Positions 3,796-51,777 of a stretch of 64,000 nucleotides of DNA are shown here, one piece after another. The stretch comes from Macrostomum lignano (taxonomy: Eukaryota), in NCBI GenBank assembly GCA_002269645.1, contig NIVC01002115.1, positions 124,001-188,000 on the forward strand, read 5' to 3'. The notes below the pieces were generated by a model that saw only the letters and a list, made by a program, of their open reading frames with translations, searched no databases and had not been told where the DNA came from. The position numbers and the translations under genes are program-made. Position 1 is the stretch's first letter; each line of letters begins with the position of its first letter.

Positions 3796-3855
3796 ATTAT
3801 CACTTTTGAACTCCTTTAGAAATTTTTCGAGAATATCTTCAAGTTCGCAATCAGA

Positions 3856-6800
3856 TCAGTCCTGCTCCGAATTCAATTCGATGTCGTTAGGCGAATCAAG
3901 TTCAACTGTGGGCTCAGCGGCCGTCTCTGAAGAGGTTTTCCGTCGACTGTTGTACATGCTGATGAATCGCTCGCCAGAAGGTTTCTTGGCGCTGAGCCAC
4001 AGTCTGCCAGCCATCAAAGCATTTCGTCGTTCTGAAGCTGACAGAGCTGACTGCTGCGGCTGTTGCGGCTGCTGCTCATGATGCTCATAATGGTCTTGAT
4101 GAGGAGTCTCTTCCTGCAGAGGCTAAAAGTCATTTATGAGAGATTTTCGTTAGGCATTGAGGCTGATCGTACAGACCCATTGGGTCAGCTATTTTTAAAC
4201 TGAATGGAGTACAAGCATTTTACCTCACTGGTGTCGACAAATTTGGCTGCATTGCGACGTTTCTGAGACTTCTGGAATTTAGTTAAAGTGTAGAATACAT
4301 GTAGGTTTTAAACGGGCTTGCTGTGATTTGATTAGAAAGCTAGAAATACATTTAGTTGTTAAAGTGCTACATGGATAACTATTTTTGGTATGTGTTCTAT
4401 GTTCTAAAGGAATGTATGGGTGATTCCTGAGGAGTGTTGGCGCGATTCCTAAGGGGTGTTGGGGGCGACTCCTGAGGAGTGTTGGCGCGATTCCTAAGGG
4501 GTGTTGGGGGCGACTCCTGAGGAGTGTTGGCGCGATTCCTGAGGAGTGTAGGGGGTGATTCCTGAGGAGTGTAGGGGGCGATTCCTGAGGAGTGTTGGGG
4601 TGATTCCTGAGGAGTGTAGGGGGTGATTCCTGAGGAGTGTTGGGGGTGATTAATGAGGAGTGTTTGGGGTGATTCCTGAGGAGTGTAGGGGGCGATTCCT
4701 GAGGAGTGTAGGGGGCGATTCCTGAGGAGTGTTGGGGCGATTCCTGAGGAGTGTTGGGGGTGATTCCTGAGGAGTGTTGGGGGCGATTCTTGAGAAGTGT
4801 AGGGGGCGATTCCTGAGGAGTGTTGGGGGTGATTCCTGAGGAGTGTAGGGGGTGATTCCTGAGGAGTGTTGGGGTGATTAATGAGGAGTTTTTGGGGCGA
4901 TTCCTGAGGAGTGTTGGGGGCGATTCCTGAGGAGTGTTGGGGGTGATTCCTGAGGAGTGTTGGGGGTGATTCCTGAGGAGTGTTGGGGCGATTCCTGAGG
5001 AGTGTTGGGGGTGATTAATGAGGAGTGTTTGGGGTGATTCCTGAGGAGTGTAGGGGGCGATTCCTGAGAAGTGTAGGGGGCGATTCCTGAGGAGTGTTGG
5101 GGCGATTCCTGAGGAGTGTTGGGGGTGATTCCTGAGGAGTGTTGGGGGCGATTCTTGAGGAGTGTAGGGGGCGATTCCTGAGGAGTGTTGGGGGTGATTC
5201 CTGAGGAGTGTAGGGGGTGATTCCTGAGGAGTGTTGGGGGTGATTAATGAGGAGTTTTTGGGGTGATTCCTGAGGAGTGTTGGGGGTGATTCCTGAGGAG
5301 TGTAGGGGGTGATTCCTGAGGAGTGTTGGGGGTGATTAATGAGGAGTTTTTGGGGCGAATCCTGAGGAGTGTTGGGGGCGATTCCTGAGGAGTGTTGGGG
5401 GCGATTCCTGAGGAGTGTTGGGGGTGATTCCTGAGGAGTGTTGGGGTGATTAATGAGGAGTGTTTGGGGTGATTCCTGAGAAGTGTTGGGGGCGATTCCT
5501 GAGGAGTGTTGGGGGCGATTCCTGAGGAGTGTTGGGGGTGATTCCTGAGGAGTGTTGGGGCGATTCCTGAGGAGTGTTGGGGGCGATTCCTGAGGAGTGT
5601 TGAGGGTGATTCCTGAGGAGTGTTGGGGGTGATTCCTGAGGAGTGTTGGGGAGATTCCTGAGGAGTGTTGGGGTGATTAATGAGGAGTGTTTGGGGTGAT
5701 TCCTGAGGAGTGTAGGGGGCGATTCCTGAGGAGTGTAGGGGGCGATTCCTGAGGAGTGTTGGGGCGATTCCTGAGGAGTGTTGGGGGTGATTCCTGAGGA
5801 GTGTTGGGGGCGATTCTTGAGGAGTGTAGGGGGCGATTCCTGAGGAGTGTTGGGGTGATTCCTGAGGAGTGTTGGGGCGATTCCTGAGGAGTGTTGGGGT
5901 GATTAATGAGGAGTGTTTGGGGTGATTCCTGAGGAGTGTTGGGGGCGATTCCTGAGGAGTGTAGGGGGCGATTCCTGAGGAGTGTTTGGGTGATTCCTGA
6001 GGAGTGTAGGGGGCGATTCCTGAGGAGTGTTTGGGTGATTCCTGAGGAGTGTTGGGGCGATTCCTGAGGAGTGTTGGGGGTGATTAATGAGGAGTGTTTG
6101 GGGTGATTCCTGAGGAGTGTTGGGGCGATTCCTGAGGAGTGTTGGGGGCGATTCCTGAGGAGTGTTGGGGGTGATTCCTGAGGAGTGTTGGGGGTGATTC
6201 CTGAGGAGTGTTGGGGCGATTCCTGAGGAGTGTTGGGGTGATTAATAAGGAGTGTTTGGGGTGATTCCTGAGGAGTGTTGGGGGCGATTCCTGAGGAGTG
6301 TTGGGGGCGATTCCTGAGGAGTGTTGGGGTGATTCCTGAGGAGTGTTGGGGCGATTCCTGAGGAGTGTTGGGGTGATTAATGAGGAGTGTTTGGGGTGAT
6401 TCCTGAGGAGTGTTGGGGGCGATTCCTGAGGAGTGTAGGGGGCGATTCCTGAGGAGTGTTTGGGTGATTCCTGAGGAGTGTTGGGGGTGATTCCTGAGGA
6501 GTGTAGGGGTGATTCCTGAGGAGTGTTGGGGCGATTCCTGAGGAGTGTTGGGGGTGATTAATGAGGAGTGTTTGGGTGATTCCTGAGGAGTGTTGGGGGC
6601 GATTCCTGAGGAGTGTTGGGGCGATTCCTGAGGAGTGTTGGGGTGATTCCTGAGGAGTGTTGGGGCGATTCCTGAGGAGTGTTGGGGGCGATTCCTGAGG
6701 AGTGTTGGGGGTGATTCCTGAGGAGTGTTGGGGTGATTCCTGAGGAGTGTTGGGGCGATTCCTGAGGAGTGTTGGGGTGATTAATGAGGAGTGTTTGGGG

Positions 6801-9800
6801 TGATTCCTGAGGAGTGTTGGGGGCGATTCCTGAGGAGTGTAGGGGGCGATTCCTGAGGAGTGTTTGGGTGATTCCTGAGGAGTGTTGGGGGTGATTCCTG
6901 AGGAGTGTTGGGGTGATTCCTGAGGAGTGTTGGGGCGATTCCTGAGGAGTGTTGGGGGTGATTAATGAGGAGTGTTTGGGGTGATTCCTGAGGAGTGTTG
7001 GGGGCGATTCCTGAGGAGTGTTGGGGGCGATTCCTGAGGAGTGTTGGGGGTGATTCCTGAGGAGTGTTGGGGTGATTAATGAGGAGTGTTTGGGGTGATT
7101 CCTGAGAAGTGTTGGGGGCGATTCCTGAGGAGTGTTGGGGGCGATTCCTGAGGAGTGTTGGGGGTGATTCCTGAGGAGTGTTGGGGCGATTCCTGAGGAG
7201 TGTTGGGGGCGATTCCTGAGGAGTGTTGAGGGTGATTCCTGAGGAGTGTTGGGGGTGATTCCTGAGGAGTGTTGGGGAGATTCCTGAGGAGTGTTGGGGT
7301 GATTAATGAGGAGTGTTTGGGGTGATTCCTGAGGAGTGTAGGGGGCGATTCCTGAGGAGTGTAGGGGCGATTCCTGAGGAGTGTTGGGGCGATTCCTGAG
7401 GAGTGTTGGGGGTGATTCCTGAGGAGTGTTGGGGGCGATTCTTGAGGAGTGTAGGGGGCGATTCCTGAGGAGTGTTGGGGGTGATTCCTGAGGAGTGTAG
7501 GGGGTGATTCCTGAGGAGTGTTGGGGGTGATTAATGAGGAGTGTTTGGGGTGATTCCTGAGGAGTGTTGGGGCGATTCCTGAGGAGTGTTGGGGGCGATT
7601 CCTGAGGAGTGTTGGGGGCGATTCCTGAGGAGTGTTGGGGGCGATTCCTGAGGAGTGTTGGGGGTGATTCCTGAGGAGTGTTGGGGGTGATTCCTGAGGA
7701 GTGTTGGGGTGATTCCTGAGGAGTGTTGGGGCGATTCCTGAGGAGTGTTGGGGGTGATTAATGAGGAGTGTTTGGGGTGATTCCTGAGGAGTGTTGGGGG
7801 CGATTCCTGAGGAGTGTTGGGGGCGATTCCTGAGGAGTGTTGGGGTGATTCCTGAGGAGTGTTGGGGCGATTCCTAAGGAGTGTTGGGGTGATTAATGAG
7901 GAGTGTTTGGGGTGATTCCTGAGGAGTGTTGGGGGCGATTCCTGAGGAGTGTAGGGGGCGATTCCTGAGGAGTGTTTGGGTGATTCCTGAGGAGTGTTGG
8001 GGGTGATTCCTGAGGAGTGTTGGGGGTGATTCCTGAGGAGTGTTGGGGCGATTCCTGAGGAGTGTTGGGGTGATTAATGAGGAGTGTTTGGGGTGATTCC
8101 TGAGGAGTGTTGGGGCGATTCCTGAGGAGTGTAGGGGGCGATTCCTGAGGAGTGTTGGGGGTGATTCCTGAGGAGTGTTGGGGGTGATTCCTGAGGAGTG
8201 TTGGGGCGATTCCTGAGGAGTGTTGGGGGTGATTAATGAGGAGTGTTTGGGGTGATTCCTGAGGAGTGTTGGGGGCGATTCCTGAGGAGTGTAGGGGGCG
8301 ATTCCTGAGGAGTGTTTGGGTGATTCCTGAGGAGTGTTGGGGGTGATTCCTGAGGAGTGTTGGGGGTGATTCCTGAGGAGTGTTGGGGTGATTCCTGAGG
8401 AGTGTTGGGGGTGATTCCTGAGGAGTGTTGGGGGTGATTCCTGAGGAGTGTTGGGGGCGATTCCTGAGGAGTGTTGGGGGCGATTCCTGAGGAGTGTTGG
8501 GGTGATTCCTGAGGAGTGTTGGGGGCGATTCCTGAGGAGTGTTGGGGGCGATTCCTGAGGAGTGTTGGGGTGATTCCTGAGGAGTGTTGGGGCGATTCCT
8601 GAGGAGTGTTGGGGTGATTAATGAGGAGTGTTGGGGGTGATTCCTGAGGAGTGTTGGGGGCGATTCCTGAGGAGTGTAGGGGGCGATTCCTGAGGAGTGC
8701 TGGGGTGATTAATGAGGAGTGTTTGGGGTGATTCCTGAGGAGTTCAGGGCCGATTTCTGAGTCGCCCAATCAGCACCAACCTGCCCGATTTCCTCGAGCT
8801 CCTTATCGCTTAGTTTCACTCCTCCGTTGAGGCCTCTGCGATTCGCTTCATCCGCAGCTGCAGCCGCCGCTGCTGCTTCCGCTGCCGCCGCGGCTTCGTC
8901 GCCTTCAGTCCGTCGGTCCAGCCGGTTCAGTCGACGTCGGAGCAGGTGCAGCCTCAGGCGATGGAAGGCGAGGCCGGTGGCCGCCACGCGACGGTCCTGC
9001 TCGAGGCCGCTTTCGCTGTCAGGGCAGACAGAAGGGAATGAAATTTGGCGTTTTGTCAAAATGTAAACTACCCCGTATCCAATGTAAACTACCCCGCATC
9101 CAATGTAAACTACCCGTATCCAATGTAAACTACCCCGCATCCAATGTAAACTACCCCGTATCCAATGTAAACTACCCCGTATCCAATGTAAACTACCCCG
9201 TATCCAATGTAAAATACCCCGTATCCAATGTAAACTACCCCGCATCCAATGTAAACTACCCCGCATCCAATGTAAACTACCCCGTATCCAATGTAAAATA
9301 CCCCGTATCCAATGTAAACTACCCCGTATCCAATGTAAACTACCCCGTATCCAATGTAAACTACCCCGTATCCAATGTAAACTACCCCGTATCCAATGTA
9401 AACTACCCCGTATCCAATGTAAACTACCCCGTATCCAATGTAAACTACCCCGTATCCAATGTAAACTACCCGTATAACAATGGAACTCGATGCATTGCTA
9501 ATAGGGCATCTATCTGCTATTTTTAGACGATTAAATCTCGCTGACATTCGCTGATGCATGTAAGTGGATTTAAGCTAAATCAAAATAGCTACAACAGAGC
9601 CATAGGCTTCTCAACCTGTGGTTTCCTGCGGCACCCAGAGCGGCGGCTGCAGCGCTGCCAATCCGCAGACTCCGGACTCGGTCAGCCTGCTGACTGGCTG
9701 CCGACTTCGCTCTGGCAATGAACTCGCCCGTGTCTGTCGGCGAGTAGTGATCGTTCGCCTGCGGTGGGCGGTGAATGCGGACTACTGTGGTACTGCGCTG

Positions 9801-18664: not shown

Positions 18665-19072
18665 NNNNNNNNNNNNNNNNNNNNNNNNNNNNNNNNNNNN
18701 NNNNNNNNNNNNNNNNNNNNNNNNNNNNNNNNNNNNNNNNNNNNNNNNNNNNNNNNNNNNNNNNNNNNNNNNNNNNNNNNNNNNNNNNNNNNNNNNNNNN
18801 NNNNNNNNNNNNNNNNNNNNNNNNNNNNNNNNNNNNNNNNNNNNNNNNNNNNNNNNNNNNNNNNNNNNNNNNNNNNNNNNNNNNNNNNNNNNNNNNNNNN
18901 NNNNNNNNNNNNNNNNNNNNNNNNNNNNNNNNNNNNNNNNNNNNNNNNNNNNNNNNNNNNNNNNNNNNNNNNNNNNNNNNNNNNNNNNNNNNNNNNNNNN
19001 NNNNNNNNNNNNNNNNNNNNNNNNNNNNNNNNNNNNNNNNNNNNNNNNNNNNNNNNNNNNNNNNNNNNNNNN
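18665..19072. other. Assembly gap (408 N)
   Basis: Run of N; ORFs spanning it are artefacts. Confidence 1.
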
Positions 19073-20576: not shown

Positions 20577-21783
20577 CGGGTCTATGAAATTTGCTTGCGA
20601 GAAGTTTGCTTGCGAAGTTTGCTTGCGGGACTTTTGCTTGCGGAAATTTGCTTGCCGAAGTCTGCTTGCCGAAGTTTGCTTGCGGGACTTTTGCTTGCGG
20701 AAATTTGCTTGCCGAAGTCTGCTTGCCGAACTTTGCTTGCGGAATTTTGCCTGCCGAAGTTTGCTTGCCGAGCTTTGCTTGCCGAACTTTGCTTGCCGAA
20801 TTTTGCTTGCAGGAAATTTGCTTGCTGCACATAAGCTTGCCGAAGTTTGCTTGCAGGAAATTTGCTTGCCGAACTTTGCTTGCAGGAAATTTTCTTGCGA
20901 GGTTTGCCAGCCAATTTTTTGCGGAACCTTAAAGAAACCTATTTTTGAGCTCTTGTATTTCTAATTTTCATTTTCTAAGATTCGTGGAAGTCGCCTATAG
21001 TGTTATGATTTTGTATGAGGATATGGCGGATTATTAACTAAATTTTATATACTAAAATATTATTAGTATATGCATATTACATTAGCATCACTGCAATTAT
21101 CATACCTGCTCAATCGTGCTGAAATCAGGAACTACAAATATTTATACTGTTACCGATCCCTATCTACCTATACTAAATCTCTAAGCATTCTATATACTAC
21201 ATTCTTAGAATGAAACTCTATAAGCCTAGTTTGAAAGCTTAGTGTCAAGTCAGTTTACGTCGACCCTGATAAGAATCCACTTGCAAAGCATGCATCTGTA
21301 GTAAGTAATAATTGACTGACCAACTTTACAAGCAATCAAAACAAGCAAGCAAACAAGAAAATAATTCTGCAAGTTAAAACCTTGCGATTGTGTGATTGCA
21401 AATTTCTAGAAAGCAGACATCAAAATTTCGCAAGCAAAGTTCGGCAAGCAAAATTCCTGCAAGCAAAGCTCGGCAAGCAAACTTCGGCAGGCAAAGTTCC
21501 TGCAAGCAAATTTCCTGCAAGCAATTAAAGTTCGGCAAGCAAAGTTCGGCAAGCAAACTTCAGCAAGCAAAATTCCGCAAGCAAAGTTCGGCAAGCAAAG
21601 TTCGGCAGGCAAAATTCCGCAAGCAAACTTCGGCAAGCAAAGTTCGGCAAGCAAAGTTCGGCAAGCAAAGTTCGGCAAGCAAAATTCCGCAAGCAAAGCT
21701 CGGCAAGCAAAGTTCGGCAAGCAAAATTCCTGCAAGCAAAGTTCGGCAAGCAAACTTCCCGCAAGCAAACGTCGTACTCCCGG
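20577..21783. mobile_element. Foldback-like element, about 1.2 kb: two oppositely oriented arrays of a 15-bp unit (AAGTTTGCTTGCCGA) around a ~500-bp AT-rich core
   Basis: Array 20588-20910 reads TTTGCTTGCCGA and array 21412-21770 reads TCGGCAAGCAAA. Both outer ends share CGGG-N2-TAYGA-N2-TTTGCTTGC in inverted orientation. Confidence 0.75.
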
Positions 21784-23049: not shown

Positions 23050-24938
23050 CGGGTTCGTCTGAGAAAACTATATCCGACGTCGCCGAAAAACCTTTATACG
23101 CGACAGTCCAGCAGTTGTGCTTGCAAAATATGTGAGACTGCCCGGTTCAACCCGATTGGGAAAGGACTGGGAACATGGAAACCAGAGCCACATTCGCTTG
23201 GACGACCCGCGTGTTCGGATCCAGATCATGGTCTGCCACCGGCACAACCTGTTGTCATCTGCCAGCGCTGCCACTCAATGGTTGGCAGAGGTTTGCCTCA
23301 CTACTGCACGCAAACACAGCGACGAGAAAATCTATTCAGTAAGTTGTCGCTAGACCGTCGAGGTGCCGAAATCCACGCAAGTGACGTGATCAAAGCTAAG
23401 GCTGCTTCCACCGGCTCAAACTCTAGATTTCAATTGGCAACTAGAGGTCGTGATCTTACAGTGTGTGTTGGGCAACGGGCTGGTAGTTCTACATCAATGA
23501 GAGGTGGCTGCGCCGTACCAGCAGAGGAATTCAGCCGATTCCAGCAGACGCTGTGTTTGAGCGGTCGGCAAACTAAGTTGGCCGCCCAATTTTTTCGAGC
23601 ATGGAAAGGACGCAAGAGCATTGAGCCAAATTTGCGCAGCAAACTGAGCGCCATCGACTCTGCTCTAGACGATTTGTTTGAGTTGACTAACCTAGAGATG
23701 GACTGTGCCAAAGGAAAAAGGGAAATGCGCAGCATTGTATTCTGCACTGATCCTCTGGCTCTGATTGACAGAGTGATGGCACGTCGTCAGGTCAGTGCAG
23801 ATGACGGCGCATTGATTAAAGTTGGCATCGACAGTGGAGGCGGCTTCTTGAAGTTTTGTGTTAGCATTGTGCCTGCTCAAGGTTTAAAAGATCAACCTAC
23901 CGGAAGTCGCAGCACGTACGCAGAAGGCGCATGCCGTTTCCATTTTGAGGATGGAGGAGTCCGTAAACTGCTCCTGCTTGCCATTGCCGAATCTGTTTCC
24001 GAGTCCTACGATAATCTGCAGCAGATCCTGAATCTTCTTAATTTGCAAGGATTTTCATTCTGTGCAGCAGTTGATATGAAAATTTCGAATGCGATCCTGG
24101 GACTTCAGTGCTGCAGCAGCACCCATCCCTGCCCTTGGTGCGAGACTGCCAGGATCGATTTTTCTAATCCAGACCGCACGAACGTGTTGAGATCGATCGG
24201 CGGTATTCGGCTACAGGCATTTGAGTACCAGCGCACTGTAGAAGAAAAAGCGCCGCGCAACGTGTCTGCTGCTGCTTTCAAAACTGTGTGCGTCCTCCTC
24301 TGCTCGAAGTTCCAGACAGCACGATGGTGCTCCAGGCCATTCCACCAATGGGGCTGCATCTCTTGCTTGGCGTGACCAATCGACTATTCGAAGAACTGGA
24401 CACTCAACTGCGAGGACTCGAAGACTGTCAGATAAGCACCGATGACTGGCTACAGCAGCTTGGCCTTCGACGACCATTGCAGAACGGTGGGAACTTTGCC
24501 GGAAACGCCTGCGAGTGTCTTCTAAATGGCGTCGACATTTTGATTGCAATGCTGGCTCAGCACAATGTGTTTTCGGCAATGCCTGTAGCTCACGCCCTAC
24601 GCTGCTTCCGCGATGTGAAGGCCTCGTGCTTTGGTATGAGTGTGTGTGGAGACTTTGAGAATCGAGTCCGGGCATTCGAACAAGCCTATATCGATCTTGG
24701 AATCCGCGTCACCCCGAAAGTCCACGCTGTTATTGACCACGTTGTCCAGTTTTTGAACATGTCCAATCTAGCTGGAGAACCCAAGAAGGGACTTGGCTTC
24801 TGGTCTGAGCAGGTGGTTGAGACTGCACACCACGATTTCAGCAGCATGTGGCAAGACTTTCGGATCGATTTTCATCATCCATCGTATCCAGATCGACTGC
24901 ACAAGTGTGTTGTTGCATACTGCTCTCGTCATGCCTAA
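23050..24938 (+). mobile_element. Chapaev-like (CMC/Transib/RAG1 clan) DDE transposase, about 630 aa, with one frameshift at the A-run 24280-24283
   Basis: N-terminal CACKIC (CxCxxC) and CQRC...GRGLPHYC zinc motifs. Core motifs: KVGIDSGGG (D), AVDMK (D), HPCPWC, PPMGLHLLLG, FAGN, KVHAVIDH (HxxxxH) and WSEQVVETAHHDF (E). Adding one A at TTCAAAACTGTG joins ORFs 23278..24375 and 24288..24938 as FKNCVRPPL. Confidence 0.85.
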
Positions 24939-26503
24939 ACAAAATGTGAACTAGCTAAATCAATCAAGACTGCGAATTAGGATTATACATTTCTCTTTAT
25001 TGGGATGAACAAATAGTTCTTAGTCAGACCCTGTAGACTGGAAAGCGAAATTAAACAGAACATAAACAGGAAGTAAATAATTGGAATCTTTCAAAAAGCG
25101 TGTTATCTTACCCATTCAACCCACCGAAATACAATGTCCGCATTTCAAAATTCCATTCCAGCTTTGCAATGCATGCATAGAGATTGTTAGTTCACTAGAA
25201 AATGAAATCTAAAACAGACTAGATGATCGCTAGCTATTGTCTTATCCCGATAGGACCCTAAAGTTATTTTTTCTTTTATTTATTTTTGAATTAATGATAG
25301 GAATACATTAGGTAGCTGGTGGAAACCTTAATTTAATTCTTTCTACGAGCGTATGGTAAACTTATATCGCAGAAGTCCTTGTTCTTACCCATCATCATGG
25401 AAAGGGAATAGCTTCCTTTGAAAACTCAGCAGAATTTAATAGAAGGATATGCCTATGGTTCCAAGGGCCAAAATGGCATGAATACGAGAGCTGTGCAGCA
25501 AATTTACAGGCTCACAGCCAATGAGATGGTAGCTACGTATGAGGAGGGAATAATAGCTACAACTCAAAAGCAAGCGATAGAAAAATATCTGGGATAATAT
25601 GCCCTCCATGCCTTGCATCACTCACGCACAATTTTGCGCAATGCTTCTTTGTCCACTTTTATGTAGCATTCTCTGTACTGTACGAGTGTTTATGCTGTTT
25701 TTTGTTACATTTAGTCACAATTATTCATTGATGTTTCAATTTATACTTTATACTTTGGACTTTGTAAGGTGATGGCATACCTATGAATTATAATGAAAAG
25801 TTTCTGACTTGTTTTAAGATCATTTTTTCAAATTTCACAAACTCATGTAGACACTCATTTTTTGCATCACGCATATTGAAAACCAATAGTAATTAGGTCA
25901 TATGGTAATAAAGTGCTGTAAATCAGAGATAGCTCGGGAGATTTTTTTGAAATTGCACATATGTTGTGCTAAGGTCCAGATGAGTGTGTAAATTATTGTC
26001 ATTTCAGGCTGACTTTATTTTCACCTTTAAAGGGCTTTAAGACATGTGTGGAATAAGCTGTTCAGTCGCGACTAGTGAAGACCTCTATCCAGCCTGGGAA
26101 TGCGTCTAAAACTATTTAAGTACTTAAAGTTTACTAAAACTACTTAAAGTTTCCTTTTAAGTTTTTCCGAGCCGAGTCAGCCAATCTCGATAATTATCAC
26201 ACGACAAGAAGTCATCTTTTTTCTGGACATCCCACAGCTGAGATCAATAAAAAACGATCCTCGAACTGAGAACTCCACAGTCCCAGTGACGCGTCACGGG
26301 TCTTCTAGAAGATGTTTGCACCATTTGCCTTCGCTAAGCATTCCCTTTAGGATGTGATATTTTTAAGTTACTTTTATTTATCAACTTCTCGTTGCGTTCT
26401 TTCGAATGTAGTTATTGTTCTCGTGGCTTTTAATGAAATCTTTCGTTGCCGTTGAATTCCGCTTTAGTCATAGTTTCCACCCCAACCTTATCAAAGTTCC
26501 GTT

Positions 26504-26818
26504 CTAATCATTAGGTTCCGCTCCAATCATAGGTTCCTCTCTAATCATAGGTTCCGCTCTAATCATAGGTTCCACTCTAATCATAGGTTCCAATCTAATC
26601 ATAGGTTCCAATCTAATCATAGGTTCCGCTCTAATCATAGGTTCCGCTCCAATCATAGGTTCCGCTCCAATCATAGGTTCCGCTCTAATCATAGGTTCGG
26701 CTCCAATCATAGGTTCCAATCTAATCATAGGTTCCACTCTAATCATAGGTTCCAATCTAATCATAGGTTCCAATCTAATCATAGGTTCCGCTCCAATCAT
26801 AGGTTCCGCTCTAATCAT
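26504..26818. repeat. 18-bp minisatellite (TCTAATCATAGGTTCCGC), about 17 copies, left arm
   Basis: Unit read directly; it gives the AEPMIR pseudo-ORF. Confidence 0.95.
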
Positions 26819-27261
26819 TGTGCTAAACTATACGCTCCGCTCTAATGTTTCGGTCATTTAAGTGCTCAAATACTCGTATACCGTAATAAAACATTCAAGG
26901 TACCATAAAACTTACTATGCGTCACCAGCATAGAATTCAGGGTGGTAAATAAACTGCACCTTTATAAAAATTAATGGTGCGTCAGTATCCAAAAGTCGCA
27001 ACATAAGCGCATCGGCCTTGCTATTGCACAGAAACCCGTTAACAGCGGAAGAACCCGTAAAGTTAACCAAAGCAGCAGAGCACAAAAGCATGGCAGCGTC
27101 AGTAATACGATTTCTTACTCAATGAAATCAATCGCTAACAAGATAAACAATGAGGCTTTTTGAGAAACATACACAATCACCAAAATGTGTATAAAACCGT
27201 GTAAACACGGGAGCCGTAACGTGAAGTCATAAGTTAAAGAACACTTTACTAGTCAACAGAA

Positions 27262-28500
27262 ATGAATACTTTTAAATACGTTGGAGATCCTTTGGGTGAG
27301 TATTTTTCAAAGCTTATTGAATTACATGCAGTTAGTTTAAAACAGTTTCCTTTTTATTATTGTAGGGCACAGGACCCATCTGCAGCAAAACTTCAACCGA
27401 ACCCTTTCTGAAGAATATTTAACAAAAAGATACAATTTACTTGTTCAGTCATACTGGAATGCCTTTATGAAATTTGGAGTAGGAATTTCCAAGGCCATCG
27501 GCTTCCCAACAGGCCTGCTGCTGCAGATCCTCACCGTCATTTTCCTGGTTCGCGGAAACACCGGCTTCTCTCTGTCAGCCAGGAAGTGGTTTCTCCTAGT
27601 CGTCAGTGCGGACATTGCGGGCACCTTGTACCGCGCATACGAAATGATCACTGATGATTTTTTTAATTCCAATCCCTACGCTAGTTATGGACCCGGAAAC
27701 GATCTGCAGTTTCTGATGTGGGGCCTGCGTCTAAAGACCACAGATTCCTCCAGAATGTAATGTGCAGAGTATTCTTCATCATCCTCTACTTCCCGCTGTA
27801 CCTGTCTCCGTTCGCTCTGACCATCAGCTCGCTACTGCGCTGCTACTGCATCAAGTATCCGCTGGTTGCCAAGGCCCACCTGACCAAGAGACTCGACCTG
27901 ATCTTGATTCTTGCGGCTTCGCTGCTTGCTCTGGTTGTGGCGGTCGTGTTCGGCGCTCTGATTATAGACGGCTGGAGTTTGACGTTGTTTTCCACGACAA
28001 TATACGGCATCCATGTTTACTATGGGAAATGCAGCGTTCCGGCCTTTCAGGTTATTAACACTGATAAGGAACTGCAGTTCATTGGCTTTGTTTTCATGCT
28101 AGTAGTGGCATTCTTCATATGCTTTCTGAACATGCTGTCTGCCACTATCATAATCATAGTGCTGTTTCAGTCGAAAAGGAATAGAGCTGTGCTGTCAATG
28201 AGTGGCAATGAAGGAGCTGACGCAGTGAACATGGAGGCTCGAGCCACCGCCAGGCTGCTGGGGATGAACGTCACGCTGTTGTTGTGTTTCTTCTTCTCCC
28301 GACTGCTGCTGGTGGTCAGCACGAGGATTGACAATTATGTGGATCCGATTTCTTGTGTGTTTGTAGACTTCTGCTGTTTTGTTTTATCTAGCACTACTCT
28401 ATTTAATTCGTTTGAAATAAACCTTTTTCAGATGTGGTCTCTGATCGACTGGCGGCTATGCTGTTCCACATTCCGTACTTTACTAACTCGCTGTTCATAG
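27262..28500 (+). pseudogene. Rhodopsin-family (class A, peptide-receptor-like) GPCR with a frameshift. Exons 27262-27295 and 27366-28500
   Basis: ATG exon, 70-nt GT-AG intron and an N-terminus with an NRT sequon. Hydrophobic TM segments, TM3 Cys (SRMCRVFF) and a DRY-position motif (LLRCYCIKYPL). An AATGT tandem duplication at 27754-27763 creates a frameshift and TAA. Confidence 0.8.
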
Positions 28501-29153
28501 CCGGTCTGTCCAGAAGCTTTTACCAGTTTCTGTTTCCCTGCATCGGAGACTCGAAGCCGAAGCTGTCTTCCTCCGATAGTCAGAGGACTTTTTGATTGAA
28601 TCAACATATTTCGAATGTAAGAACTCAGTGACAGTGGAGCAACTCTTAGTTGTGAAGTAAAGCAGAATAGATTGACCTTTTTGGGCATACAGAATATCTG
28701 CCTAAATAAAATATTACCGACTGACATTCTCGCTATTAATTAAGCAGGCAATAAACTTTTAATGTAGGTAAATTATTTTTTTAGCAAACATGGATGAAAA
28801 ATGTGAGCATAAACATAGATATACATGTACACAACAACTTCATGGTTCAAAGTTCAATTAACAGGAAATCATACTCAATAATGCAGGCACCTATAGACGG
28901 TGCAAGTCTGTTCTCATTGTCTCTGTGTTAATTTTAGACCCTAATTTAGAGTTGGCTCTTACGAAAAATTATCGTAGAAAATGCAATGACTTGAAACGAA
29001 GTCTTTGATTATGCACTGGAAACTGGCTTTCAAGAGGCAGACAGACAGAGATGTATCCATATTATAGGGCTCCGGTTTTACTATATATTTGTGGGCTCCT
29101 CCCACATTTGCCAGGCAAATTGTGGCACGAAACACGAAAGATAAGTACCGATG

Positions 29154-30339
29154 GTGCATTACATAGCATGGGGTCCGACTATTCAGAGGGGGTGACTACG
29201 GTGAGTCAGGAAAAGACAGTGTCGTAGTCAGTGGGAGCAGTTGACCCTGACCAGACTGTGGAGGGATCAGCCCAGACCATCACATCTCCCCTGAGGCTGG
29301 AGGCTGGAGTCAAAGTCGGTCCGGTGGTGCACGGGTGTGCTGGGGATATCGCTGGGCCGATGAATCCACTTCTAGTGCCAGGATGCCGCCGGCAGCCGAA
29401 TGTTCATCGTCAGAGTCGTCCTGCTGCTGGGCCGTTGGTGGGGGCGTGGCGGCAGCGGCAGCGGCAGGCAGGCGCGGCGGTGTGTCGGTGCCGCGGTCTG
29501 GCAGCGACAGTAGTTGATCAGTGTGACGCTGCATGAGAGGGCTGTCTGTGCTCACAGTGCAGTTTCAGGGCCCCGCCCGAAAATTTGACGGTGCCTTCTT
29601 GCCAACGGTTTCTAGTGGTAGTGCTGTAGTCTCGCAACAAAACTCGGTCTTCCGGTCGGAACGTCCTGGCTTGCCTGGGTGACTGTTGAAGCGCTGACTG
29701 CTGCTGCTGGTGCCGGTTGCTGACGAGTGAGGGCGTTAGCAGATCGAGCCGGGATCAAATCGGCGCCCGAAGAGCAGCTGGCTGGGAGCCGAGCCCGAGG
29801 CTGAATGTGGCGTGTTGCGATAGGTGAGCAGGAACTGCTGCAAAGCTTTCTCGGGCGGTCCCGATTTCTTCAGGTGCTGTTTCAACACTCACGAACCGTT
29901 CAGCTTGTCCCTTTGTCGCCGGTTGGAAATAGCGCTAAAGTCACGTGCTCGACACCGTTGATCCTCAAGAACTCGGTGAATTCCGATGACGCAAACTGGG
30001 CTCCGTTGTCCGACACCAGAGTCTGCGGCAGGCCCCTGGCGCGCAAAAAAAGCTTGCAAAGAAGCTGATTGTCTAGGCCGACCTCATGCTGGTCAGCTGC
30101 TTCACCTCCGGCCACTTGCTATGCGCGTCGATAAGCACTAGAAAAGTGCGTCAGTTCACTGGCCCAGAAAATTCGACACGCAGTCTTGACCACGGCTCCG
30201 ATGGGAAGGACAATGGGTGCTTTGGCGCTTTGGGCGGATCAGCCTGGTTGAGCCGGCAGGTTTCACATGCCTTGACGGAGTTCTCTACGAGCGCTTTCAT
30301 GTGGCTAGCACCAGGAAGATCTTGATGCTGTGCCCTCGT
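29154..30339 (-). mobile_element. Degenerate Ty3/Gypsy 3' end (integrase, PPT, LTR start), left-arm copy
   Basis: Mirror image of 31260-32445. Confidence 0.85.
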
Positions 30340-30344
30340 CTTTT

Positions 30345-30943
30345 TGCATTTTAGGGAGACCCTAGTGTTCCTAGCGATCCTTTCTCATGGCGTTGAGCTT
30401 GGCCATCATGATGCCAGCAATCTTGGAAAAGTGCGGTTTAAAGTTAAGTTCCTTACTAGAGTGACACCTAGGAGGCCGCAGGGTCGTAGTATTGAATTTC
30501 ATCCTGACAAAGTTTACGTAAGGATTGGCTTTTCGTGATGTGGTTGCCATTAAACTTAAAGAAGGAAACTGCCTTGCTTTTGATGGTGCTGCCAACGTCG
30601 CCCAGCAATTTTTTTAAGGTGCCAAAGTAGCTGTTAAGCCCCTTCGCAGACATGCTGGACTTTCTGGCGCTGGCCCAGTCAGCAAGGTGGTCAGCAAATT
30701 GGCTAATATTAACCCGGTTGTCCAGCAGTCTGGGAATGGAGCTGACATTTACTATGAAAAAAAGAGGCGAAAGCACCCCAACCTTGAGGAGACGCCAGCA
30801 GCAAGATCAAAGCCCTCGCTGACGGCACACCCACCTGGATTTTAATCTCCCTGCAATCATGATCCTTACCATGTTGTGAGGAACCTCATACTCAAAGAAC
30901 CTTTGTCTAAGATAACTATGCCAGACCCCGTCGAAAGCTCCCT
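30345..30943 (-). mobile_element. Degenerate non-LTR (LINE) reverse transcriptase fragment
   Basis: Minus-strand frames give GAFDGVWH, GVSSRLGVLSPLFFIVNV, QFADHL and LGVTL..KELNFKPH, matching the RT motifs AFDxVxH, GVPQGSVLSP, (Y/F)ADD and YLGV. Confidence 0.8.
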
Positions 30944-31255
30944 GCTTCAAATTATGAACTAGCTTCTCTATTCGCGTCTGCTTTGACGTCAAGGGAGCTT
31001 TCGTTGGCAGCACCATCAAAAGCAAGGCAGTTTCCTTCTTTAAGTTTAATGGCAACCACATCACGAAAAGCCAATCCTTACGTAAACTTTGTCAGGATGA
31101 AATTCAATACTACGACCCTGCGGCCTCCTAGGTGTCACTCTAGTAAGGAACTTAACTTTAAACCGCACTTTTCCAAGATTGCTGGCATCATGATGGCCAA
31201 GCTCAACGCCATGAGAAAGGATCGCTAGGAACACTAGGGTCTCCCTAAAATGCAA
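30944..31255 (+). mobile_element. Plus-strand copy of the same LINE fragment, carrying the native RT motif VCFDVKGAF and a 336-bp internal deletion
   Basis: GTC TGC TTT GAC GTC AAG GGA GCT TTC G (about 30976-31003) is joined directly to TTGGCAGCACC, which lies 336 nt further along in the left-arm copy. Confidence 0.75.
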
Positions 31256-31259
31256 AAAG

Positions 31260-32445
31260 ACGAGGGCACAGCATCAAGATCTTCCTGGTGCTAGCCACAT
31301 GAAAGCGCTCGTAGAGAACTCCGTCAAGGCATGTGAAACCTGCCGGCTCAACCAGGCTGATCCGCCCAAAGCGCCAAAGCACCCATTGTCCTTCCCATCG
31401 GAGCCGTGGTCAAGACTGCGTGTCGAATTTTCTGGGCCAGTGAACTGACGCACTTTTCTAGTGCTTATCGACGCGCATAGCAAGTGGCCGGAGGTGAAGC
31501 AGCTGACCAGCATGAGGTCGGCCTAGACAATCAGCTTCTTTGCAAGCTTTTTTTGCGCGCCAGGGGCCTGCCGCAGACTCTGGTGTCGGACAACGGAGCC
31601 CAGTTTGCGTCATCGGAATTCACCGAGTTCTTGAGGATCAACGGTGTCGAGCACGTGACTTTAGCGCTATTTCCAACCGGCGACAAAGGGACAAGCTGAA
31701 CGGTTCGTGAGTGTTGAAACAGCACCTGAAGAAATCGGGACCGCCCGAGAAAGCTTTGCAGCAGTTCCTGCTCACCTATCGCAACACGCCACATTCAGCC
31801 TCGGGCTCGGCTCCCAGCCAGCTGCTCTTCGGGCGCCGATTTGATCCCGGCTCGATCTGCTAACGCCCTCACTCGTCAGCAACCGGCACCAGCAGCAGCA
31901 GTCAGCGCTTCAACAGTCACCCAGGCAAGCCAGGACGTTCCGACCGGAAGACCGAGTTTTGTTGCGAGACTACAGCACTACCACTAGAAACCGTTGGCAA
32001 GAAGGCACCGTCAAATTTTCGGGCGGGGCCCTGAAACTGCACTGTGAGCACAGACAGCCCTCTCATGCAGCGTCACACTGATCAACTACTGTCGCTGCCA
32101 GACCGCGGCACCGACACACCGCCGCGCCTGCCTGCCGCTGCCGCTGCCGCCACGCCCCCACCAACGGCCCAGCAGCAGGACGACTCTGACGATGAACATT
32201 CGGCTGCCGGCGGCATCCTGGCACTAGAAGTGGATTCATCGGCCCAGCGATATCCCCAGCACACCCGTGCACCACCGGACCGACTTTGACTCCAGCCTCC
32301 AGCCTCAGGGGAGATGTGATGGTCTGGGCTGATCCCTCCACAGTCTGGTCAGGGTCAACTGCTCCCACTGACTACGACACTGTCTTTTCCTGACTCACCG
32401 TAGTCACCCCCTCTGAATAGTCGGACCCCATGCTATGTAATGCAC
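31260..32445 (+). mobile_element. Degenerate Ty3/Gypsy 3' end: integrase, PPT and start of the 3' LTR, right-arm copy
   Basis: Frames give CETC...PWSRL, LVLIDAHSKWPEV, GLPQTLVSDNGAQFASSEF, FLLTYRNTPHSASGSAPSQLLFGRR and a C-terminal RYPQHTRAPPDRL-stop. PPT AGGGGAGA at 32307-32314 is followed by TGT at 32315. Multiple stops and frameshifts; LTR end uncertain. Confidence 0.85.
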
Positions 32446-33098
32446 CATCGGTACTTATCTTTCGTGTTTCGTGCCACAATTTGCCTGGCAAATGTGGGAG
32501 GAGCCCACAAATATATAGTAAAACCGGAGCCCTATAATATGGATACATCTCTGTCTGTCTGCCTCTTGAAAGCCAGTTTCCAGTGCATAATCAAAGACTT
32601 CGTTTCAAGTCATTGCATTTTCTACGATTATTTTTCGTAAGAGCCAACTCTAAATTAGGGTCTAAAATTAACACAGAGACAATGAGAACAGACTTGCACC
32701 GTCTATAGGTGCCTGCATTATTGAGTATGATTTCCTGTTAATTGAACTTTGAACCATGAAGTTGTTGTGTACATGTATATCTATGTTTATGCTCACATTT
32801 TTCATCCATGTTTGCTAAAAAAATAATTTACCTACATTAAAAGTTTATTGCCTGCTTAATTAATAGCGAGAATGTCAGTCGGTAATATTTTATTTAGGCA
32901 GATATTCTGTATGCCCAAAAAGGTCAATCTATTCTGCTTTACTTCACAACTAAGAGTTGCTCCACTGTCACTGAGTTCTTACATTCGAAATATGTTGATT
33001 CAATCAAAAAGTCCTCTGACTATCGGAGGAAGACAGCTTCGGCTTCGAGTCTCCGATGCAGGGAAACAGAAACTGGTAAAAGCTTCTGGACAGACCGG

Positions 33099-34337
33099 CT
33101 ATGAACAGCGAGTTAGTAAAGTACGGAATGTGGAACAGCATAGCCGCCAGTCGATCAGAGACCACATCTGAAAAAGGTTTATTTCAAACGAATTAAATAG
33201 AGTAGTGCTAGATAAAACAAAACAGCAGAAGTCTACAAACACACAAGAAATCGGATCCACATAATTGTCAATCCTCGTGCTGACCACCAGCAGCAGTCGG
33301 GAGAAGAAGAAACACAACAACAGCGTGACGTTCATCCCCAGCAGCCTGGCGGTGGCTCGAGCCTCCATGTTCACTGCGTCAGCTCCTTCATTGCCACTCA
33401 TTGACAGCACAGCTCTATTCCTTTTCGACTGAAACAGCACTATGATTATGATAGTGGCAGACAGCATGTTCAGAAAGCATATGAAGAATGCCACTACTAG
33501 CATGAAAACAAAGCCAATGAACTGCAGTTCCTTATCAGTGTTAATAACCTGAAAGGCCGGAACGCTGCATTTCCCATAGTAAACATGGATGCCGTATATT
33601 GTCGTGGAAAACAACGTCAAACTCCAGCCGTCTATAATCAGAGCGCCGAACACGACCGCCACAACCAGAGCAAGCAGCGAAGCCGCAAGAATCAAGATCA
33701 GGTCGAGTCTCTTGGTCAGGTGGGCCTTGGCAACCAGCGGATACTTGATGCAGTAGCAGCGCAGTAGCGAGCTGATGGTCAGAGCGAACGGAGACAGGTA
33801 CAGCGGGAAGTAGAGGATGATGAAGAATACTCTGCACATTACATTCTGGAGGAATCTGTGGTCTTTAGACGCAGGCCCCACATCAGAAACTGCAGATCGT
33901 TTCCGGGTCCATAACTAGCGTAGGGATTGGAATTAAAAAAATCATCAGTGATCATTTCGTATGCGCGGTACAAGGTGCCCGCAATGTCCGCACTGACGAC
34001 TAGGAGAAACCACTTCCTGGCTGACAGAGAGAAGCCGGTGTTTCCGCGAACCAGGAAAATGACGGTGAGGATCTGCAGCAGCAGGCCTGTTGGGAAGCCG
34101 ATGGCCTTGGAAATTCCTACTCCAAATTTCATAAAGGCATTCCAGTATGACTGAACAAGTAAATTGTATCTTTTTGTTAAATATTCTTCAGAAAGGGTTC
34201 GGTTGAAGTTTTGCTGCAGATGGGTCCTGTGCCCTACAATAATAAAAAGGAAACTGTTTTAAACTAACTGCATGTAATTCAATAAGCTTTGAAAAATACT
34301 CACCCAAAGGATCTCCAACGTATTTAAAAGTATTCAT
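33099..34337 (-). pseudogene. Second copy of the GPCR pseudogene. Exons 34337-34304 and 34233-33099
   Basis: Mirror of 27262-28500; ORF translations are identical, including the 5-bp duplication. Confidence 0.8.
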
Positions 34338-34780
34338 TTCTGTTGACTAGTAAAGTGTTCTTTAACTTATGACTTCACGTTACGGCTCCCGTGTTTACAC
34401 GGTTTTATACACATTTTGGTGATTGTGTATGTTTCTCAAAAAGCCTCATTGTTTATCTTGTTAGCGATTGATTTCATTGAGTAAGAAATCGTATTACTGA
34501 CGCTGCCATGCTTTTGTGCTCTGCTGCTTTGGTTAACTTTACGGGTTCTTCCGCTGTTAACGGGTTTCTGTGCAATAGCAAGGCCGATGCGCTTATGTTG
34601 CGACTTTTGGATACTGACGCACCATTAATTTTTATAAAGGTGCAGTTTATTTACCACCCTGAATTCTATGCTGGTGGCGCATAGTAAGTTTTATGGTACC
34701 TTGAATGTTTTATTACGGTATACGAGTATTTGAGCACTTAAATGACCGAAACATTAGAGCGGAGCGTATAGTTTAGCACA

Positions 34781-35239
34781 ATGATTAGAGCGGAACCTAT
34801 GATTAGAGCGGAACCTATGATTAGATTGGAACCTATGATTAGATTGGAACCTATGATTAGAGTGGAACCTATGATTAGATTGGAACCTATGATTGGAGCC
34901 GAACCTATGATTAGAGCGGAACCTATGATTGGAGCGGAACCTATGATTAGATTGGAACCTATGATTAGATTGGAACCTATGATTAGAGCGGAACCTATGA
35001 TTAGAGAGGAACCTATGATTGGAGCGGAACCTATGATTAGAGCGGAACCTATGATTGGAGCGGAACCTATGATTAGATTGGAACCTATGATTAGATTGGA
35101 ACCTATGATTAGATTGGAACCTATGATTAGAGAGGAACCTATGATTGGAGCGGAACCTATGATTGGAGAGGAACCTATGATTAGAGCGGAACCTATGATT
35201 AGAGAGGAACCTATGATTGGAGCGGAACCTAATGATTAG
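34781..35239. repeat. 18-bp minisatellite, about 25 copies, right arm (8 more units than the left arm)
   Basis: Reverse complement of the 26504-26818 unit; 144 bp longer. Confidence 0.95.
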
Positions 35240-35694
35240 AACGGAACTTTGATAAGGTTGGGGTGGAAACTATGACTAAAGCGGAATTCAACGGCAACGA
35301 AAGATTTCATTAAAAGCCACGAGAACAATAACTACATTCGCAAGAACGCAACGAGAAGTTGATAAATAAAAGTAACTTAAAAATATCACATCCTAAAGGG
35401 AATGCTTAGCGAAGGCAAATGGTGCAAACATCTTCTAAAAGACCCGTGACGCGTCACTGGGGCTGTGGAGTTCTCAGTTCGAGGATCGTTTTTTATTGAT
35501 CTCAGCTGTGGGATGTCCAGAAAAAAGATGACTTCTTGTCGTGTGATAATTATCGAGATTGGCTGACTCGGCTCGGAAGAACTTAAAAGGAAACTTTAAG
35601 TAGTTTTAGTAAACTTTAAGTACTTAAATAGTTTTAGACGCATTCCCAGGCTGGATAGAGGTCTTCACTAGTCGCGACTGAACAGCTTATATTC

Positions 35695-39709: not shown

Positions 39710-40522
39710 CCAAGAGGGGTGAAAATTTCCCCCCCCCGGACAATTTTTTGTTGCGCCGTATTGGAGCAACGCAGGCACACGAAATCCAAGAACACGCGCT
39801 AACTTTTTGTGTCGCACCTTCTTGATTCGATTCATTGAAACAAGAATCGACAAGAATAAATAAGATCAAGATCTGTCGATTCTTGAAACAAGAATCAAGT
39901 CGCCAGCCCTCCAGAGTCCAGACCGTCGAGATATTCGACGATTCTGCCAGAAGGCGATCTGATTTTTCCCACAAGCGCTAGTGTATTCAGTACACCCCCT
40001 GTGCGCCAATCAGCACTGCGCCTCAGTGCAGCCTTGCCAAGTCTCCAAATTTCATCAGCACGTCGACCACATGTGTCTGCATCAGATGACGGAATGCTCG
40101 AGAGACTAGCTGAGGATTTAGCAACCAGCAGTTGATTTTTGCCCACTGTCGAGGCTTGATCAGCGAAACTAGAAAAATGTGCAAAAGCGTGTCCATAGTC
40201 ACCTGGTGCCACCTGTTGAAGATCCAGAAGCTCCACCTGGGTGTAGGCTAGTGACCAATGAAGTCAGAGCTGATGCAGACACATGTGGTCGACGTGCTGA
40301 TGAAATTTGGAGACTTGGCAAGGCTGCACTGAGGCGCAGTGCTGATTGGCGCACAGGGGTGTACTGAATACACTAGCGCTTGTGGGAAAAATCAGACCTT
40401 CTGGCAGAATCATCGAATATCTCGACGGTCTGGACTCTGGAGGGCTGGCGACTTGATTCTTGTTTGAGAAGGTGCGCAAAAAATAATTGTCTGGCGGGGG
40501 GGGGAATTTTTCACCCCCTTGG
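39710..40522. mobile_element. Long-TIR MITE/foldback element, TA-flanked
   Basis: Ends TA-CCAAGAGGGGTGAAAATTTCCCC / GGGGAATTTTTCACCCCCTTGG-TA. Inner arms 39886-40085 and 40270-40465 are near-perfect reverse complements around a 184-nt loop. Confidence 0.8.
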
Positions 40523-51092: not shown

Positions 51093-51777
51093 AAGGCGCC
51101 AAGCACCAGGGGTGCCAAGCACCAGGGGCGCCAAGCACCAGGGGCGCCAAGCACCAGGGGCGCCAAGCACCAGGGGCGCCAAGCACCAGGGGCGCCAAGC
51201 ACCAGGGGCGCCAAGCACCAGGGGCGCCAAGCACCAGGGGCGCCAAGCACCAGGGGCGCCAAGCACCAGGGGCGCCAAGCACCAGGGGCGCCAAGCACCA
51301 GGGGCGCCAAGCACCAGGGGCGCCAAGCACCAGGGGCGCCAAGCACCAGGGGCGCCAAGCACCAGGGGCGCCAAGCACCAGGGGCGCCAAGCACCAGGGG
51401 CGCCAAGCACCAGGGGCGCCAAGCACCAGGGGCGCCAAGCACCAGGGGCGCCAAGCACCAGGGGCGCCAAGCACCAGGGGCGCCAAGCACCAGGGGCGCC
51501 AAGCACCAGGGGCGCCAAGCACCAGGGGCGCCAAGCACCAGGGGCGCCAAGCACCAGGGGCGCCAAGCACCAGGGGCGCCAAGCACCAGGGGCGCCAAGC
51601 ACCAGGGGCGCCAAGCACCAGGGGCGCCAAGCACCAGGGGCGCCAAGCACCAGGGGCGCCAAGCACCAGGGGCGCCAAGCACCAGGGGCGCCAAGCACCA
51701 GGGGCGCCAAGCACCAGGGGCGCCAAGCACCAGGGGCGCCAAGCTCCAGGGGCGCCAAGCACCAGGGGCGCCAAGCC
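51093..51777. repeat. Near-perfect 16-bp minisatellite (CAAGCACCAGGGGCGC), about 42 copies
   Basis: Unit read directly, with only a few variant units at the ends. It explains the repetitive ORFs between 51013 and 51835. Confidence 0.98.

Follow-up and report, generated by a model that had tools for sequence, protein, structure and literature searches.

Architecture of the inverted duplication

The window analysed here, a stretch of 64,000 nt from the flatworm Macrostomum lignano (contig NIVC01002115.1 of assembly GCA_002269645.1, positions 124,001-188,000 of the forward strand), contains a near-perfect inverted duplication of 9.6 kb, the centre of which lies inside a dead long interspersed nuclear element (LINE). 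In right-arm orientation the features are, in order, a decayed reverse transcriptase (RT), a decayed integrase core, a G protein-coupled receptor (GPCR) gene on the opposite strand, a minisatellite and an outer block of 443 nt. We consider it probable that this palindrome truly exists in the M. lignano genome as an interstitial inverted duplication, in which the right arm together with the central loop served as the template of a U-turn and the right arm afterwards suffered a deletion.

The repeat finder reported inverted arms at 26512-30597 and 31002-35087 (positions are those of the window) with 404 nt in between, and blastn pushed these arms outward to 26053 and 35690, across the 18-bp minisatellite. 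Alignment of the centre gave the real layout, which is a left arm at 26053-30943 (4891 nt, 4.9 kb), a loop at 30944-30991 and a right arm at 30992-35690 (4.7 kb). The two long arms are thus inverted and nearly identical, which is a defining feature of duplications formed by fold-back or another kind of U-turn. The flanks outside 26053 and 35690 are unrelated to each other, and at the second junction of the structure (26052/26053) the two flanks share zero bases at the boundary. No direct repeat that could represent a target-site duplication was found at the palindrome ends (26052/35691), and no further copy of the palindrome unit was detected within the window by blastn.

The centre of the palindrome

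A first-pass annotation of this DNA had placed a perfect 12-bp inverted pair around a 48-nt loop inside the apparent 404-nt spacer, with the true axis near 30967, and both observations were reproduced. The left 12-mer (CGAAAGCTCCCT) and the right 12-mer (AGGGAGCTTTCG) are exact reverse complements at 30932-30943 and 30992-31003, the loop between them occupies 30944-30991, and the axis lies at 30967.5. The 10 bases next to the right arm that belong to the spacer only have a perfect reverse-complement copy elsewhere in the spacer, for which P = 4.8e-4 was obtained from 200,000 shuffles and 3.7e-4 analytically, and the reverse-complement partner of the right 12-mer sits exactly where the left arm would continue. 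The 12-mer pair is not a product of chance (P about 4e-4) and is the innermost piece of the palindrome. The central junction sequence specific to the right arm is AGCTTTCG followed directly by TTGGCAGC.

When the 84-nt centre was folded as single-stranded DNA, a free energy of -16.4 kcal/mol was obtained (z = -4.2). The ends of the loop had also been described as imperfectly complementary (GCTTCAAA and TTTGACGTCA). A 5-bp match, TCAAA/TTTGA, does exist there, but it lies at unequal offsets, would be expected by chance at about 3-5% by our own estimate, and is missing from the minimum-energy fold; being near chance level, it was given zero weight as evidence.

Sources of the loop other than the LINE itself were considered and set aside. 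A template for the loop elsewhere in the window was represented only by 10-11-mer matches, and copying of the loop from another window site was rejected, as these matches are at chance level. A SMRTbell adapter or filler sequence was rejected as well, since the right 22 nt of the loop encode part of an RT motif.

The dead LINE and the native orientation of the loop

The element at the centre, as judged by its translation, is a dead non-LTR (LINE-type) reverse transcriptase, in agreement with the first-pass annotation. It matches Pfam RVT_1 with 36.4 bits in the plus reading versus 27.6 bits in the minus reading, it carries stops and frameshifts, and its nearest relatives are 900-aa APE+RT proteins, among which P0004 and P0006 hold both Exo_endo_phos and RVT_1. 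RT motifs A (xDxxxAFD), B (GxPQGxxLSP) and C (xADD) occur in this order, as in RTs of the LINE class, although they have decayed, for example to KVGVLSPLFF and FADH.

The plus-strand translation across the loop and into the right arm reads ...SIRVCFDVKGAF followed directly by VGSTIKSK, and the minus-strand translation reads ...KLVHNLKQGAFDGVWH... Sixteen of the 16 fetched APE+RT LINE relatives, which are 29-41% identical to the element, read [LF]-D-x-x-x-A-F-D-x-[VI]-W at this place, and the plus reading FDVKGAFDGVWH fits this pattern exactly. The minus reading, NLKQGAFD, lacks Asp at the catalytic position and has one residue in excess. A family hidden Markov model (HMM) built from 23 relatives gave 82.8 bits with the plus loop, 75.4 bits with the minus loop and 74.2 bits without the loop, that is, a gain of 8.6 bits versus 1.2 bits. 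The plus score was attained by 4 of 3000 shuffled loops (P about 0.001), and the minus reading scored at the shuffle mean. Furthermore, in minus-strand tblastn searches with 13 relatives all alignments started at 30938-30944, at the edge of the loop, and none reached into it.

Because the plus motif matches that of the relatives, the HMM and shuffle scores favour the plus loop and the minus-strand alignments halt at the loop edge, at least the right 22 nt of the loop (30970-30991) are natively joined to the right 12-mer, and 30943/30944 is the novel junction. The spacer is thus asymmetric, continuous with one arm only and newly joined to the other, as in U-turn duplications generally, and this is resolved for 30970-30991. 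The order from the loop into the right arm that had been proposed earlier from the motif VCFDVKGAF is accordingly the one favoured by each of these comparisons. With the right arm as the template, TTTGACGTCA is expected upstream of AGGGAGCTTTCGACGGGG; for the opposite arrangement the minus-strand order would have to be native and to read ...TTTGAAGCAGGGAGCTTTCGACGG, and among the distant relatives, compared at the level of the motif, this order was not seen.

A word-indexed protein search yielded zero matches, an exhaustive phmmer search yielded 24 matches of at most 41% identity, which are usable at motif level only, and metagenome scans with two exact patterns for the predicted native order gave no match. 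Within the window, tblastn with 13 relatives detected neither a LINE APE domain nor RT N-terminal sequence anywhere. The 5' part of the LINE is hence absent from the window, and loss of the sequence distal to the turn is another defining feature of a U-turn duplication.

The 336-nt deletion in the right arm

The first-pass annotation had further stated that the right arm skips 336 nt at a CG microhomology. The skip is present, with CG at both breakpoints (30596-7 and 30932-3; 31002-3 in the right arm). In the left arm, read on its minus strand, the RT runs unbroken from motif A (GAFDGVWH) through motif B (GVLSPLFF) and motif C (FADH) to the STIKSKAV region, covering HMM positions 37-171, and the right arm jumps from GAF directly to VGSTIKSK. 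Because the left arm holds RT motifs A to C contiguously, the difference is, on the strength of the translation, an ancestral segment of 336 nt that was lost from the right arm; an insertion of 336 nt into the left arm was rejected on account of the contiguous RT sequence. The inverted copy retains these 336 nt, and it was therefore made from an undeleted template.

Both deletion breakpoints lie in CGACG pentamers (30596-30600 and 30929-30933, in LINE sense), of which the join keeps only CG, and the join is 3 nt out of register with a simple deletion at a 5-nt microhomology. The deletion is one-sided, starts 12 nt from the loop and has 2 nt of microhomology, features which would be given as the expected product by end joining after a break near the tip of a hairpin. 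As had been suggested, the deletion enlarged the spacer, the unpaired length of which grew from 48 nt to about 400 nt. By analogy with other palindromes it is plausible that the deletion stabilised the structure, as longer spacers reduce the fragility of palindromes (PMC7999016).

Differences between the arms

Although the repeat finder scored the arms as '100%' complementary, they do differ slightly. With the minisatellite left aside, 6 substitutions separate the arms in 4227 nt. The outer 448 nt contain 4 of these and the inner 3779 nt contain 2 (binomial P = 0.0016). Each of the six is a base change, 4 being C/T transitions, and there are no indels among them. The minisatellite, with the unit AGGTTCCGCTCTAATCAT, differs by 8 units (144 nt) between the arms; the two arrays match at either end and diverge in between, where variants are reshuffled, and units were therefore gained or lost after the duplication.

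These few differences are compatible with a palindrome that is not brand new, the interior of which may have been kept alike by arm-to-arm gene conversion, from which the length-polymorphic minisatellite would isolate the outer block. A more far-reaching proposal, which we regard as speculative and rather improbable, is that the structure, rather than a passive scar, is a small autosomal gene-bearing palindrome of long persistence, with edges about 0.9% diverged, in which ongoing conversion homogenises the inner 3.8 kb, including the GPCR pair, and which a one-sided central deletion made heritable. If this were true and such structures were common, fold-back duplication could regularly feed the gene redundancy and karyotype instability of the neopolyploid M. 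lignano.

Gene content of the arms

The coordinates of the features are collected in the table. A 260-aa seven-transmembrane open reading frame in the arm is 99% identical to a UniRef GPCR of M. lignano. The GPCR copies share 98.5% identity with the M. lignano UniRef model P0025 and 43-51% with the paralogue P0026. Both have the same 1-nt frame change beside an AAA run at about 27733, a sign either of a pseudogene or of an indel in the assembly consensus. The decayed integrase core matches Pfam rve with 41.9 bits. The arms are thus host DNA with old transposon debris and not a mobile unit, and the palindrome, which duplicates a GPCR gene with the same frame change in both arms, has no evident function.

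Table. Features of the palindrome and its contents, in window coordinates
Feature	Position	Strand	Basis
Left arm, probable inverted copy; keeps the 336 nt lost from the right arm	26053-30943		Repeat search, blastn, arm alignment
Outer block, left arm	26053-26495		4 substitutions relative to partner 35248-35690, at 26164, 26281, 26305 and 26402
18-bp minisatellite, left copy, about 18 units	26496-26818		Tandem-repeat search, array comparison
Rhodopsin-type GPCR gene copy, left arm; 2 exons, frame change near 27733	27386-28592	+	Pfam, UniRef match
Decayed LTR-retrotransposon integrase (rve) fragment, left arm	29725-30303	-	Pfam
Decayed LINE RT fragment; motifs A, B, C and following region contiguous	30471-30943	-	Translation, Pfam, tblastn, HMM
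336 nt of RT (motifs A to C) that the left arm alone retains; boundaries CG-ambiguous, equivalently 30598-30933	30596-30931	-	Translation, HMM
Left 12-mer, innermost end of the probable copied arm; novel (U-turn) junction 30943/30944	30932-30943		Sequence inspection, arm alignment
48-nt loop; plus strand encodes RT segment ...SIRVCFDVK leading into motif A	30944-30991	+	Translation, HMM; homology supports 30970-30991
Right 12-mer, encodes GAF; natively continuous with the loop; deletion junction 31003/31004 next to it	30992-31003	+	Sequence, translation
Remainder of right arm, probable template; natively continuous with the loop except for the 336-nt deletion	31004-35690		Repeat search, blastn, arm alignment
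Integrase (rve) fragment, right arm	31296-31874	+	Pfam
GPCR gene copy, right arm	33007-34213	-	UniRef match
18-bp minisatellite, right copy, about 26 units, exceeding the left copy by 8	34781-35247		Tandem-repeat search, array comparison
Outer block, right arm, 443 nt; palindrome end at 35690/35691	35248-35690		Arm alignment

Other features of the window

Dozens of minisatellites are spread across the window (e.g. 2591-3796, 51095-51776 and 62770-64000), and a satellite of 4.3 kb occupies 4418-8761, with about 190 copies of the 23-bp unit GGGTGATTCCTGAGGAGTGTTGG at about 90% identity. A run of 408 N at 18665-19072, a scaffold gap, lies 7 kb to the left of the palindrome. Two arrays of a 14-bp minisatellite (20586-20899 and 21430-21769) are inverted relative to each other, about 85% complementary and about 520 nt apart, a layout like that of the repeat-built inverted termini of Foldback-type elements. 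Another inverted repeat, at 39886-40085 and 40270-40465, has arms of 200 nt that are 97.5% complementary around a 184-nt spacer and may be a small foldback or an element resembling a miniature inverted-repeat transposable element. In the left flank, an open frame of 212 codons (24300-24935, plus strand) enters from upstream of 24300 and lies about 1.1 kb from the palindrome edge; it is without a Pfam match and could be the C-terminal portion of an unclassified gene, either transposase-like or of the host.

Proposed mechanism

The ancestral plus strand would have read LINE RT, loop, AGGGAGCTTTCG, the 336 nt of RT, the rest of the RT, integrase debris, the GPCR gene (minus strand), minisatellite, outer block and right flank. 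A break or a stalled fork inside the dead LINE would have produced a 3' end located at 30944 or just to its left, and this end may have turned back onto the complementary strand 48 nt away, either by intrastrand fold-back priming or by a template switch of the fork. Outward copying of about 4.9 kb would have created the left arm, and the new strand would then have been joined to the present left flank at 26052/26053, with loss of the 5' part of the LINE; end joining of the displaced nascent strand and a second template switch would each explain this junction. Later, or less likely in the same event, the 336 nt beside the loop would have been deleted from the template arm between two CG dinucleotides, with a possible stabilising effect. 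Afterwards the minisatellite would have changed by 8 units and six substitutions would have accrued, mostly in the outer block, while the inner 3.8 kb may have undergone arm-to-arm conversion.

The structure bears the signature of a U-turn because it has two arms, a short asymmetric loop native to one of them, and upstream LINE sequence that was lost. Fold-back priming has been documented at inverted repeats of 5-11 bp, one case in wild-type yeast being a 5-bp repeat whose spacer measures 35 bp (PMC10622511), and human inverted duplications form by fold-back as well (PMC3907307). The first-pass annotation had taken the right arm as the original and the left arm as its fold-back copy. The right arm as the template is supported by the native order of the loop and by the undeleted copy, but fold-back by itself gives no interstitial 4.9-kb copy with unlike flanks. 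Because the second junction at 26052/26053 is required, a replicative template switch, by fork stalling and template switching (FoSTeS) or microhomology-mediated break-induced replication (MMBIR), fits equally well as fold-back at a double-strand break (DSB). The proposal that the 12-bp pair was the priming site had to be abandoned, since before the deletion the pairing ran uninterrupted over 4.9 kb and the 12-nt length was set by the deletion breakpoint.

Several points weigh against a U-turn templated by the right arm. All four junctions come from one assembly. The native order of the loop was judged from relatives of 29-41% identity, a comparison that resolves the right 22 nt of the loop only, and a close copy of this LINE was found neither in the window (tblastn, sensitive blastn) nor in protein databases. 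The real microhomology is hidden inside the 12-mer and is not readable without a native LINE copy, and the stem-adjacent pair on the loop side, 30944 G and 30991 A, is mismatched. Classical DSB fold-back yields a hairpin-capped end and a dicentric chromosome, so that an extra joining step must be assumed. Finally, the clustering of differences in the outer block (P = 0.0016, from six substitutions only) could also reflect consensus polishing of ambiguously mapped arms.

Alternative explanations

It is possible, though we think it unlikely, that the whole structure arose in a single complex replicative event of the FoSTeS/MMBIR type with three template switches, in which case the deletion would not be a later stabilising event. 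While the native locus was being copied, the nascent strand would have jumped over 336 nt at CG and turned round after another 12 nt and 48 nt. It would then have followed the parental strand, which still had the 336 nt, over 4.9 kb before a last switch to the left flank. The 2 nt of microhomology at the deletion and the position of its breakpoints in a repeated CGACG pentamer are consistent with this order of events, the very short tract of 12 nt between two junctions is typical of serial template switching, and the interstitial outcome requires at least two switches anyway. However, the second pass needs a template that differs from that of the first by holding the 336 nt, a duplication with an ordinary microhomology deletion after it is the more parsimonious course, and the time elapsed since the duplication, as indicated by the minisatellite and the substitutions, leaves room for a later deletion.

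An assembly artefact appears improbable. The palindrome could in principle derive from a chimeric snap-back or missed-adapter long read, from an amplification chimera, or from a misjoin of near-identical copies in a redundant neopolyploid genome. The published M. lignano assemblies, produced by Canu, Pilon and SSPACE from PacBio continuous long reads (PMC5730564), are difficult, repeat-rich and redundant; there is an N gap in the window, and the arms are very similar. On the other hand, the two strands of a single molecule would give identical arms, and here the arms are set apart by the 336-nt indel, 144 nt of minisatellite and six substitutions. The palindrome is internal, with unrelated flanks, and does not reach the contig end; its loop is RT-coding sequence and not an adapter; and a misjoin would require reads to overlap over a junction where only 12 nt are shared. 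None of the marks of a chimeric read was seen, whether identity of the arms, an axis placed at an adapter or at the end of a molecule, or an inverted repeat that continues as far as the contig end. Exact look-ups of eight open reading frames of the window, two of which span junctions, did not find them in the protein collection, and the contig index has no entry for the UniRef M. lignano GPCR models P0025 and P0027.

The reverse polarity, with the left arm original, the LINE natively on the minus strand, the right arm a copy and NLKQGAFD a decayed motif A, is very improbable. The left arm is the more complete one, retaining the 336 nt, and the heavy decay of the LINE makes a damaged motif conceivable. 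Nevertheless, in the family HMM the minus reading, with its missing catalytic Asp and its extra residue, does no better than random sequence, the motif common to all 16 relatives is matched by the plus reading with P about 0.001, and the minus-strand alignments of all 13 relatives end at the loop edge.

That the whole 9.6 kb is a mobile Foldback-type element, or a product of LINE twin priming or RT snap-back at insertion, can hardly be maintained: minisatellite arrays do lie near the arm ends, as in Foldback elements, and the axis does fall inside a LINE RT, but there is no target-site duplication at 26053/35690, the interior is palindromic up to the 48-nt loop, a host GPCR gene and integrase debris of unrelated origin lie in the arms, which hence are not LINE cDNA, and the window has no second copy. 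Insertion of the entire unit as a transposon was accordingly rejected for want of a target-site duplication, and LINE twin priming was rejected since the arms contain a host gene. A Foldback-type or terminal-inverted-repeat transposon is marked by a target-site duplication and by multiple copies or a transposase; the palindrome has neither a direct repeat at its ends nor another copy in the window, and its interior consists of a host gene with retroelement debris.

Comparison with known systems

Natural germline palindromes rarely retain a readable centre. In the M. lignano palindrome the conserved RT motif of the dead LINE acts as a built-in orientation marker, which shows what arm, together with the loop, was the template and on what side DNA was later lost, and the locus can serve as a worked example of a U-turn duplication followed by a central deletion, set in an animal genome known for redundancy and unstable karyotypes. 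The locus is easy to verify, and it calls for caution in annotating duplicated GPCR genes in M. lignano assemblies.

Fold-back inverted duplications have been described in yeast Mre11/Sae2 studies, in mammalian cells after I-SceI cuts, as human constitutional rearrangements and in cancer. They share with the M. lignano palindrome (PMC10622511, PMC3907307, PMC7999016) a short non-palindromic spacer native to one arm and the loss of the sequence beyond the turn, and the 48-nt loop is within the reported range (e.g. a 5-bp repeat with a 35-bp spacer in wild-type yeast). In contrast, the M. lignano duplication is interstitial, 4.9 kb long and provided with a second junction, whereas theirs are as long as a chromosome arm and pass through a dicentric intermediate; its priming microhomology is unreadable, and it is a fixed germline structure of a flatworm rather than an induced event. 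Products of FoSTeS/MMBIR are alike in the U-turn onto the complementary strand, in 0-2 nt of junction microhomology, in the 12-nt tract between breakpoints and in being interstitial, and differ in that no triplicated segment is present here; the sequence fits one event or two.

Central asymmetric deletions stabilise long palindromes, as in the 'centre-break' processing of mouse transgene palindromes and in SbcCD/Mre11-dependent processing. The deletion in the right arm resembles such stabilising deletions in being one-sided, in lying 12 nt from the loop, in widening the centre from 48 nt to about 400 nt and in its 2-nt microhomology as in end joining; a link to stability in the present case would be by analogy.

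Like the palindromes of primate and mouse sex chromosomes that are maintained by gene conversion (PMC8327919; bioRxiv 10.1101/800185), the M. lignano palindrome is more than 99.9% identical in the interior of its arms, carries a gene copy in each arm and diverges mostly at the outer edge, beyond the length-polymorphic minisatellite. It is 100 to 1000 times smaller, its gene copies have a frame change, and conversion is suggested by six substitutions only.

In conclusion, the palindrome is an instance of well-described classes, that is, of inverted duplication by fold-back or template switch with a secondary central deletion, and calls for no new mechanism.

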